In this document: positions 6,658 through 64,000 of the stretch, piece by piece | How the letters are laid out: every line of letters starts with the position of its first letter | Position numbering within the stretch: the stretch's first letter is position 1 | Assembly: GCA_965240325.2 (NCBI GenBank) | Contig: OZ251252.1 | Coordinates: 886,025 to 950,024 of the forward strand | Source: Rebecca billardiae RCC1528 | Taxonomy: Eukaryota; Protista; Haptophyta | Direction: 5' to 3' | Length of the DNA: 64,000 bases | Notes under the pieces: generated by a model | The model's input: only the letters and a program-made list of their open reading frames with translations | Told to the model about the DNA's origin: nothing | Database searches by the model: none | Program-made: the position numbers and the translations under genes

Positions 6658-7940
6658 TCACTCCTCGAGCTCGGCCGTGCGCAGGCAGTGCAGCGCGGCG
6701 GGCAGGAACGTCTTGCGCGTCGCTGAGCGGCGCAGCGTCGACAGCAGCAGAGGGCCGTCCGCCGCCGAGCCCGCGCCGCCGCCGGCCGCTGCCCCTGCCG
6801 CGGCCGCGGGCGGCGCAGCGGGCGCAGCCGACACCTCCGCAAAGCGCAGGCCAAAGCCGCCGTCGCCGATGCCCTGCCGCTGGTACAGCGGCTCGGCCAG
6901 CAGGGAGTCCGGGAGCGAGTCCGGGCTGGCCTCGAGCGCGCGGGCGAGGGCGCGCGCGAGCGCCGCGCCGTGCGCGCCCGAGCCCGCCGCGGCGGCGATG
7001 GCGACGCCCTTCAGCCCTTCGAGCACGTCCGGACTCGGCACGCCCGGACTCGGCAGCGGCGCGGTGCCGTCGGCGGCAGCGGCACCACCATCGACGCCCT
7101 CGCCGCCCGCGGCGCCCGCGCCCTCGCCGCCACACCCACGGGCCTCCTCCGCCCCCGCTGCGCCCGCGCCGCCCGCGCCGCCGCCCGCGCGCTCGCGCGC
7201 GGCCGCGGCCGCGCGCAGCACGCGCGGCTTGTCGTCCGCCGCCGTCATCGCCACCACCACCGCCACGCCCCGCTCCGCGCCGAAGCGCGCGAGCACGCCG
7301 TGCAGCGCGGCAGCGGGCGAGGCATGCGGCGCGGTGCGCGCCGCGCGTGCCAGCAGCTCATGCATCGGCGCAAACACAGCGGCGACACCGAGCCCAACTG
7401 CCGCGCCACCGCCCCCGCCGCCGGTGCCACTGCCGCTGTCGACGCCGCCGCCCGCCGCCGCCGCCGCCGGCCGCAGCGCGGCGGCGCCCTCGTCAGCCCT
7501 CGGGCTAGGGTTGGGGTTAGGGTTGGGGTTAGGGTTAGGGTTAGGGTGAGGCCGCAGCGCGGTGACACCCTTGTAGTCGAGGGCGAGGAGGTCGGCCGCT
7601 GAGAGCGCGCTCACGTCAAAGCGCGCGTCGAGCAGCCCGCCCGCCAGCGCCTTCACCGTGCGGAACCCGCCCGCCGCCGCCGCCTCGGGCACGGCGGCCT
7701 TCCGGAGCCATTTTGCATGCGCGGCGGTCGCGCGCGCCGACTCGGCGCCGCCGAGCGCCGCGGCCGCGCCAAGCGGCTCACGCGCGGCCGCGTCGGCGCT
7801 GCCGAGCGCGGCGAGCACGCGGTGCGCGGCGCGCAGGTCACGCGCGGAGAACTTGTGCTGGTCCGCCGCGAAGCCGCGCGTGTCCACCGCGATCGCGCCG
7901 AGCAGCAGGCAGCGCGCCGTCTGCAGCGCCGAAGCGGCGT

Positions 7941-7983
<43 letters not shown>

Positions 7984-8739
7984 GCCGCCGCCGCCGCCGC
8001 CGCCGGCGGGCTGTGCGATCGCGGCGGGCAGCGCCTCGAGCGCCTCGACGACGAGGGTGGAGGCCGAGCCCGCCGCGACGTCGATCGCGCGCAGCGGCGC
8101 CTCCGCGTGCGCGCCCTCGTCGCTGTGGTGGTCCACAATCGCAACGACGCGGCCGCCCAGCATGGCCGCCGCCGCGCCGTCAAGACGGTTGTGGTCAGTT
8201 AGGACGAGGTCGAAGGGGGCGGCGTCGGGGTGCGCGGCGCGCCAGCGCTGCAGCACCTCCGCACTCAGCTCGTCCCAGAACAGCAGCTCCGCCGGCGCGC
8301 CGTCGCCGCTGCCGTCCAGGTCGAAGCCGCAGTGTCGGAACAGCAGCCGCGCGTCGGCGCGCAGGCGGAACGCGCGGCGCTCGAAGGGGATGAGCGGCAC
8401 GACGAGCGGCGCGGCGGCGAGGTCGGCGGTGGTGGGACCCAGCGGGCCCTCCCCGCCACCGACCCCCGCCGCCGCCGCCGCCGCGCGCGCGTACGCCATG
8501 CACGCCGAGGATGCGAGCGTGTCAATGTCTCCCGCCATGTTGCCCAGGACGAGCGTCGGGCGCGGGCCGGCGAAGCCCGGTGGCGGGCCGGCGAGGAGGC
8601 GGCGCTTGGCGTCGGCGAGGAAGGCGTGCATCCCGGAGCGGGGCGGCCCGGCCGTGCCGCACGCCGCGCCGCGCGCTCGGGCGGAGAGGAGGGCGAGCTG
8701 CGCGCACGTGAGCAGCCGCGCGACGCTCGCTGGCCGCAT
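6658..8739 (-). CDS. DHH-family phosphoesterase, exopolyphosphatase PPX1/PRUNE-like
   Basis: Motifs LVLGNMAGDIDT, LVLTDHN, VAIVDHH, GSASTLV, LLGAIAVDT and DLLALDYK. Start could be 8808 or 8739; the latter gives MRPASVARLLTCAQLALLSARA, which is signal-peptide-like. Confidence 0.85.
7504..7549. repeat. Interstitial telomere-type (TTAGGG/TTGGGG) tract within the DHH gene
   Basis: gctagggttggggttagggttggggttagggttagggttagggtga. Confidence 0.95.
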
Positions 8740-9124
8740 CAAGGCGCCTCCGAGTCGACGACGACCGAGAGCCGCCGACGAGGGAGGGGAGGGCATTGGC
8801 ATTGGCATTTTCGGTCATATTCGCACCTGCTACTTTTTTTTTCGTAGTTCGAGAGAGTTCCGCCTCTGATTTCTGCCGATCACTGCGAGGATGCTGCGAC
8901 GAATTTCCTCGCGCGCGAGCGGCGCTCGGACCCGCAGACGGCCGCAGACAGGGTCCGCGCCCTCGTGCCCGGCAGCGGGGCCGCACGCCGGGTAGCGGCC
9001 GCGCTGCACACGCGCCATGCACCCTCTGCCCACCGCCCCGCACTGGCGCCGCGTGCGCTCGCGCATGGATCAGCGGCGGCGCGCCATGCGGCAGACTGAG
9101 GTTGAGACTGATGAGAGGGGCCGC

Positions 9125-39488: not shown

Positions 39489-62033
<22,545 letters not shown>

Positions 62034-63160: not shown

Positions 63161-63982
63161 TCGGGGTGGTAAGTGAGGTGCCGGTGCGCTGCCGTCCGTC
63201 GTGCGCGCTCCTCGCTCATCTCCACCTGCTTCGCTCGAGCGTGGGCGCGCTCGGCGCTGTCTGCCTCGCTCGCGCGCGAGCGCATTTTGGCGCTGGACGA
63301 GACTCGTGCGCATCCATGCTGCTTCTGCGTCCATCGGCAGCGTCCGGCGGCTGGGCGCACGGCGGGGCGGCGCCAGCGGGCGTGTGTCGGGCACGCTCCA
63401 CGCTCCTCACCAGCTGCTGCGCGCTCGCGGGGGCGCGCTCAACAACACGCTCCTCACCAGCTGCTGCGCGCTTGCGGGGGCGCGCTCAACAACACCTTCT
63501 GCCCTTCGTCCGAGCTGGAGCGCATGTCGGCGGCGCGGGCAGTGAGCGCACACATGCTGCTTCGGAACGTCGGGGTGGTAAGCGAGGTGCCGGTGCGCTG
63601 CCGTCCGTCGGGCGCGCTCCTCGCTCATCTCCACCTGCTTCGCTCGAGCGTGGGCGCGCTCGGCGCTGTCTACCTCGCTCGCGCGCGAGCGCATTTTGGC
63701 GCTGGACGAGACTCGTGCGCATCCATGCTGCTTCTGCGTCCATCGGCAGCGTCCGGCGGCTGGGCGCACGGCGGGGCGGCGCCAGCGGGCGTGTGTCGGG
63801 CACGCTCCACGCTCCTCACCAGCTGCTGCGCGCTCGAGGGGGTGCGCTCAACAACACGCTCCTCACCACCTCACCAGCTGCTGCGCGCTCGCGGGGGCGC
63901 GCTCAACAACACCTTCTGCCCTTCGTCCGAGCTGGAGCGCATGTCGGCGGCGCGGGCAGTGAGCGCACACATGCTACTTCGG
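63161..63982. repeat. ~409-bp tandem duplication (2 copies) with an internal ~46-bp sub-repeat
   Basis: Copies start tcggggtggtaag at 63161 and 63570 and are near identical. The sub-repeat acgctcctcaccagctgctgcgcgct...ctcaacaac occurs twice per copy. Confidence 0.9.
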
Positions 63983-64000
63983 CGTCCCGTTCTCGGCCAT

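Follow-up and report, generated by a model that had tools for sequence, protein, structure and literature searches.

The gene for an exopolyphosphatase-type enzyme of the haptophyte Rebecca billardiae RCC1528 carries, within its single exon, a run of telomere hexamers bracketed by two copies of the same host segment, which raises the questions of how chromosome-end sequence came to lie inside a conserved enzyme gene and of whether it is read as protein. All coordinates given here without a contig are those of the window, the whole 64,000-nt stretch that was analyzed (contig OZ251252.1, positions 886,025–950,024 of the plus strand, assembly GCA_965240325.2), whose GC content is 74–88%.

The host gene occupies positions 6658..8808 of the minus strand as a single ORF of 716 codons, and Pfam matches and homologues identify its product as a DHH/DHHA2 phosphoesterase (exopolyphosphatase of the PPX1/PRUNE type); an ORF alone is weak coding evidence at 78% GC. 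Pfam recognizes the DHH domain (PF01368; E = 3e-7, 31.2 bits against a cut-off of 28.1), and along its entire length the protein is colinear with Diacronema lutheri KFE25_004774 (P0001, 43% identity) and P0002, whose genes are both single-exon in their own contigs; these homologies place the organism as a haptophyte with affinity to the Pavlovales. The catalytic motifs are invariant in the alignment (A1: D94, D96, D205-H206-N207, D226-H227-H228, D309, D411-Y412-K413 and R698-K699), and the best solved relative is the yeast exopolyphosphatase PPX1 (2QB6, E = 1e-15). The DHHA2 domain (PF02833) is present in all four homologues compared (P0001 to P0004), whereas the corresponding half of the host protein falls under the Pfam threshold; it aligns with P0001 and P0002 up to the C-terminal RRSATRKT motif, and with all four homologues across the N-terminal part of DHHA2. 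Like yeast PPX1 and human PRUNE, the host protein contains DHH, DYK and C-terminal RKT motifs, and it is colinear with proteins of the PPX1 kind, but it differs from them in having several low-complexity loop expansions, among which is the Pro-Asn insert described here. Compared with the homologues there is also an extra low-complexity expansion, (GCGCCC)n at around 7940–8000, read as GAGAGAGA, and a Gly/Ala-rich insert of about 50 residues (6960–7230) precedes the conserved GLKG motif.

The telomere tract and its flanks are organized as follows:

7469–7493, minus strand: distal copy of the duplication, sense ACGAGGGCGCCGCCGCGCTGCGGCC, coding for (D)EGAAALRP; the derived copy, with G or C at all four differing sites.
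7494–7498, minus strand: filler CAGCC, between the distal copy and the degenerate unit.
7499–7504, minus strand: degenerate unit CTCGGG (plus-strand letters), preceding the clean telomere hexamers.
7505–7546, minus strand: seven telomere hexamers, CTAGGG, TTGGGG, TTAGGG, TTGGGG and three times TTAGGG (plus-strand letters).
7547–7549, minus strand: junction TGA (sense TCA), linking the tract to the proximal copy.
7550–7574, minus strand: proximal copy of the duplication, sense ACAAGGGTGTCACCGCGCTGCGGCC, coding for (Y)KGVTALRP; ancestral-like, with A or T at all four differing sites.

The two 25-bp copies are identical at 21 of their 25 positions and lie at an offset of 81 bp, that is, 27 codons. 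Their first 13 bases match exactly and the four mismatches (C/T, G/A, G/A and C/T) are all transitions, compared with an expectation of around 24% transitions among chance mismatches at this base composition; every time, the G or C is in the copy at 7469 and the A or T in that at 7550. The original prediction had given the same values for the copies, their transitions and the period, and its extent for the tract (7504–7549) was about right, with the clean hexamers covering 7505–7546 and the TGA the last three bases. This TGA is a single T-to-G change away from the ...GGGTTA ending found at 6 of the 17 clean loci described below, and the GCCCTCG at 7496–7502, in the filler, repeats the GCCCTCG at 7485–7491, at the end of the distal copy. 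The G-rich telomere strand is on the plus strand and, therefore, the C-rich strand is sense and is read CCT-AAC, as (Pro-Asn)6-Pro-Ser; the minus-strand translation gives the encoded order DYK-GVTALRP-H(PN)6PSPRA-DEGAAALRP.

The hexamer in the exopolyphosphatase gene is the species' own telomere repeat, placed at an internal site. The 72-Mb, 41-contig assembly has TTAGGG arrays at contig ends, which the tract at 7505–7546 matches at 92–96%, and the tract is located about 56 kb from the end of its contig, in a locus that a DNA search found to be single-copy in the assembly. Likewise, TTAGGGTTAGGG with one mismatch has an expectation of 0.00 in shuffles of the window. It could be argued that the run is a native Pro-Asn coding microsatellite that resembles a telomere by chance, as both the gene and the genome are rich in GC-rich coding microsatellites (e.g., the (GCGCCC)n at around 7940–7975). 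This is very improbable, because the hexamer is exactly the telomere unit of the species and is present as three perfect units in a row, hexamer repeats with A/T are rare in this genome, the run is absent from all the homologues, and it has a flanking duplication like those of 17 other telomere tracts. An assembly or read artefact joining telomere sequence to the gene is hardly credible, since a chimeric join would not yield a structure with copies diverged by four transitions, variant units and a conserved frame.

In each of the four homologues the segment that is duplicated in the host gene is single, and there is no Pro-Asn run; at the insertion site they read DYKQTDGGGLRVGVAAIF (P0001), DYKATALPAAAGPAA... 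(P0002), DYKATRA-DG-ALRVGVAAVF (P0003) and DFKATAG... (P0004). Because all four share this organization, the insertion is derived and specific to the lineage of R. billardiae, the empty site being seen at the protein and codon level and in homologues of which the nearest is 43% identical. The Pro-Asn run with synonymous codon variation that, according to the original prediction, an old protein repeat would have left in orthologues is absent from P0001 to P0004. The DNA of P0002 at the site is TAC AAG GCG ACC GCG CTG CCC GCC GCG; the proximal copy of the host gene retains the ACC GCG CTG of P0002, and the distal copy has GCC GCG CTG, followed by GCG GCG GCG as after the single copy of P0002. 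From the ACC GCG CTG of the proximal copy and the GCG run after the distal copy we can infer that the ancestral gene corresponded to the proximal copy joined to the sequence now found after the distal copy. Three of the four changes in the distal copy are non-synonymous.

Among the five proteins, DYK and the conserved VGVAA strand are separated by around 5 to around 60 residues, and the insert probably sits in a length-variable loop between DYK and the first conserved DHHA2 strand. This assignment derives from the alignments and from the match of the next strand to yeast PPX1, because the AlphaFold model, generated from a three-sequence alignment, was unusable (mean pLDDT of 36). A word search for a protein from this species' transcripts, using the 181 residues around the site, retrieved only two more distant homologues.

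We evaluated flanking duplications with a sample of 72 internal telomere tracts, gathered using three search patterns that avoid terminal arrays and including five tracts from the window, in which we scored non-simple flanking direct repeats (score of at least 10) in comparison to 800 random sites. A non-simple flanking duplication was found at 18 of the 72 tracts (25%) and at 34 of the 800 controls (4%; p = 2e-8); when simple repeats were not filtered out, the enrichment was weak (5/34 tracts versus 33/579 controls). In one of the 18 loci (L089, C18:1812286 and 1812355), two telomere tracts lie 69 bp from each other within a perfect tandem duplication of at least 50 bp that includes the tract itself; this duplication arose later and does not mark a break site, and leaving the locus out reduces the count to 17/71. 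As for the exopolyphosphatase gene, a flanking repeat scoring as high as that at this site was found at 2.5% of the 800 random control sites, and 21/25 repeats within 150 bp are not rare in this low-complexity DNA. By itself, its duplication is therefore only moderately significant, being suggestive but not decisive; what makes it convincing is the combination of mismatches that are all transitions, a single copy in the orthologues and the enrichment of duplications across the whole class of tracts.

A clean layout of duplicate, telomere and duplicate was apparent at 17 loci, with duplications of 10–50 bp and inserts of 18–78 bp consisting of plain telomere repeats. Around 75% of the sampled tracts from the genome are without a clear duplication, and the type of scar is not uniform. 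The variable length of the duplications argues against the action of a transposase or a fixed endonuclease and fits breaks with variable overhangs. Insertion of a transposable element was also discarded, given that the duplications (10–50 bp) are not of fixed length, the inserts are plain telomere repeats and the tail shared by some tracts has few copies. This shared tail, AACCCYAGCCCGAG, has only five occurrences in 72 Mb; it was likewise rejected as a mobile element or a telomerase RNA (CCCTAGCCCGAG), because its five occurrences genome-wide correspond to three telomere-tract ends and two unrelated sites, none of them resembling an RNA gene.

The reading that we favor, and consider probable, is that the tract is the scar of an old break repair. 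According to this, a double-strand break would have occurred in the single exon of the exopolyphosphatase-type gene, with both ends keeping the same 25 bases; around eight telomere hexamers would then have been added to one of the ends, by telomerase extending the 3′ end and with a few filler bases, before the ends were rejoined. The net gain would amount to 81 bp, or 27 codons, without any stop codon, as the C-rich strand would have landed as sense in the CCT-AAC register, leaving an in-frame Pro-Asn loop. The gene would have stayed functional because the insert lay in the putative length-tolerant loop between DYK and the first conserved DHHA2 strand, and afterwards the distal copy and the tract, free of constraint, would have drifted towards G and C.

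We lean towards telomerase as the agent that supplied the repeats. At several clean loci the repeats continue in register the G-rich end of the duplication, which is G, GG, GGG or GGGT (e.g., ...GTGGG/TTAGGG, ...GGGT/TAGGG and ...GTGG/TTAGGG, with the junction at the slash). Additionally, the tract finishes with ...GGGTTA directly before the second duplicate at 6 of the 17 clean loci, and with ...GGGTGA at the exopolyphosphatase site; the in-register starts and the ...GGGTTA endings are what templated synthesis would be expected to give, and the latter may mark the end of the telomerase template. Although the numbers are small, both the in-register starts and the ...GGGTTA ends favor telomerase over the random capture of telomeric fragments. 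At the exopolyphosphatase site, the 11 bases of filler and degenerate sequence between the duplication and the clean repeats mask the register of the junction.

The same repair scar could also have been made without telomerase, with telomeric DNA captured from a loose fragment or acquired by template switching from a chromosome end. The GCCCTCG repeat in the filler (7485–7491 and 7496–7502) looks like the nearby-template copying that is typical of polymerase-driven end joining, and chromosome-end DNA may be close, the window being the last 64 kb of contig C36. However, neither the in-register starts at other loci nor the ...GGGTTA ends at 6 of 17 would be expected from random fragments, and similar register evidence implicated telomerase in vertebrates (PMC2246262); we consider that capture or template switching is a rather unlikely source of the repeats, and retain addition by telomerase. 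The short sequence CTCGGGC is found directly ahead of G-strand repeats at window positions 7499–7505 and around 56779–56790 (56.78 kb), as well as in L066 (C10:3289066), and three tandem CTCGGG units are present at the opposite end of the L042 tract; these bases could be either decayed telomere units or copied from telomerase RNA.

The original prediction had the insertion as an older one, and the divergence of the locus agrees with this. The copies of the duplication in the exopolyphosphatase gene differ at 16% of their sites, and variants account for three of the seven clear units (one CTAGGG and two TTGGGG). By comparison with the tract at 59.7 kb in the window, which has a perfect 21-bp duplication, and with a coding tract on contig C39 composed of 13 perfect units (L110, see below), the exopolyphosphatase scar is old. 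Two of the unit changes are synonymous (CCT to CCC), and they are uninformative about selection because TTGGGG is the commonest variant in non-coding tracts too.

If the insert, or most of it, were spliced out as a small new intron, the protein would be without the Pro-Asn loop. The sense strand of the locus does contain possible donors (GT at 7568 and 7566), several branch-point-like CTAAC motifs and possible acceptors (AG at 7505, 7499 and 7489); moreover, a 78-nt option, GTCACC...GACGAG, would yield DYKG-GAAALRP, near the ancestral sequence, and many other tracts of the genome are in introns just past the 5′ splice site. Nevertheless, the donors recognized by their exon context are GTGCG or GTGTG, whereas the sole GT donor that keeps the frame, GTCACC, is without a G at +3. 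The better donor, GTGTCA (7568), would produce an intron of 64, 70 or 80 nt; with any of these lengths the frame would be shifted and the conserved DHHA2 half lost. None of the options restores the ancestral sequence exactly, as the matching positions of the duplicates have AAG/GG and GAG/GG, and the genes for P0001 and P0002 are intronless. Besides, a period that is a multiple of three and a stop-free frame, as in the five other coding cases, would be unneeded if the insert were spliced. GC-AG introns were considered and rejected as well: several options are in frame, GC dinucleotides being ubiquitous here, and none has a consensus donor. Removal of the insert as an intron is thus improbable, and from these signals we predict that it is retained in the mRNA.

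Many intronic tracts are situated 15–60 nt downstream of a 5′ splice site (GTGCG...), as seen for L041, L056, L066 and, in the window, for the tracts at 59699–59780 and 60018–60069. In L056, a 46/50 duplication includes the splice donor itself, which has been doubled.

Retention of the insert brings up how often telomere tracts run through coding DNA and in which frame. Tracts were classified using the third-position GC periodicity of their flanks and each case counted as coding was then checked by translation, given that this measure is noisy: it missed the exopolyphosphatase site on one flank and miscalled L041, which is in an intron, and L075, which is probably non-coding. Of the 72 tracts sampled, six are embedded in coding DNA:

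Window, 7.5 kb: DHH/DHHA2 gene, (PN)6 PS.
Window, 56.7 kb: 4577-codon HECT ubiquitin-ligase frame, Pro-Asn frame.
Window, 57.6 kb: same 4577-codon HECT ubiquitin-ligase frame as the tract at 56.7 kb, Pro-Asn frame.
L042: coding frame, (PS)4(PN)6.
L049: coding frame, Pro-Asn frame.
L110 (C39:66715-67436): acidic low-complexity protein, 13 perfect units, (PN)13.

In all six, the sense strand is the C-rich one and the frame is CCT-AAC. There are four stop-free combinations of strand and frame, and finding six of six in the same one has a probability of around 2e-4 if they are equally likely, or of around 0.003 allowing for the general bias towards a C-rich sense strand. For the three coding tracts that show clear duplications the period is 81, 90 and 96 bp, in each case a multiple of three, as it is at 5 of the 14 non-coding clean loci. 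These results support a filter of survival by frame, in which the Pro-Asn reading alone seems to persist in exons. Translation and the comparison with homologues both agree with the in-frame insertion and duplication, read as CCT-AAC (Pro-Asn), that had been proposed for the exopolyphosphatase CDS, and the idea that the insertion survived in an exon because it kept the frame now has genome-wide support, from the shared strand and frame of the six tracts and the periods of the three duplicated ones. Candidates for what such a filter removes are stop codons, hydrophobic repeats of Leu-Thr, Leu-Gly or Arg-Val, and G-rich sense strands. We put at slightly better than even the broader proposal that this alga repeatedly acquires new protein sequence from telomere repeats added at internal breaks, with at least six genes carrying in-frame (Pro-Asn)n loops and a selective filter acting on strand and frame.

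In L110, where the flanking duplication is 18/19 with a period of 96, the tract and its flanks are read in frame as WGHWGHAR-(PN)13-HWGQAR; this is a fresh counterpart of the exopolyphosphatase insert. Of the tracts adjoining coding DNA, 39 have a C-rich sense strand and 12 a G-rich one (binomial p = 2e-4), with strand calls that matched the exon context in all nine checkable cases. Four of the five tracts in the window are within one giant HECT ligase gene.

In primates and rodents, the repair of double-strand breaks has left short interstitial telomeric sequences (Nergadze et al., 2004, 2007; PMC2246262), where the flanks show no change, a deletion, filler or, in a minority, a duplication (PMC2246262); this last class comprises 4.6% of the rodent and 16% of the primate loci, and telomerase was implicated by repeats that start in register with the end of the break (PMC2246262). 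Features in common with the exopolyphosphatase tract are the species' own telomere hexamers at an internal site, their absence from orthologues, flanks that are sometimes duplicated or accompanied by filler, and a larger number of variant units in older tracts. In contrast, the haptophyte tract is in a coding exon, in frame and apparently translated; additionally, the duplications are more frequent in this genome (around 25%), which has a GC content of 74–88%, and longer (10–50 bp). The internal telomere tracts of vertebrates are repair scars described as non-coding. We found no mention of coding or translated telomere tracts in the literature searched on interstitial telomeric sequences.

In a second type of locus, TERC-ITS, the telomere-like repeats adjoin sequence that was reverse-transcribed from telomerase RNA (PMC2246262, PMC8537989). 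The exopolyphosphatase gene is reminiscent of this organization in that its G-strand repeats are directly preceded by a few non-telomeric bases, CTCGGGC, which recur at two other tracts; however, no telomerase RNA gene was found in this genome, and CTCGGGC may consist of decayed repeat units. Intron gain has been modeled in Daphnia as a result of break repair or of the tandem duplication of an AGGT site. The likeness to the exopolyphosphatase locus is in a duplicated host segment bracketing a filler that could supply both donor and acceptor, but here the duplicated segment is without a GT/AG pair at matching positions and there is no exactly restoring intron.

The exopolyphosphatase tract would then be a repair scar that lies within a conserved enzyme gene and is apparently translated, an outcome shared by no fewer than five further genes, all in one and the same frame. 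If this is true, it would represent a simple and datable route for a repair enzyme to write new disordered peptide loops into proteins, and would make of this alga a natural system to examine the frequency of telomere addition at internal breaks and what selection lets persist. Annotators of this genome should take care not to mistake its Pro-Asn runs for introns or for assembly errors.

Internal tracts are unevenly spread among contigs. The search patterns had 13 matches on contig C31, of 1.18 Mb, and several on each of C33, C36 and C39, and there are around five internal-tract matches altogether on the nine largest contigs (C1–C9). At the end of C36, the last 600 bases of the window (63400–64000) contain no telomere array, only a repeated unit of around 400 bp; the chromosome end of this contig may thus be unassembled, and the window may be subtelomeric.
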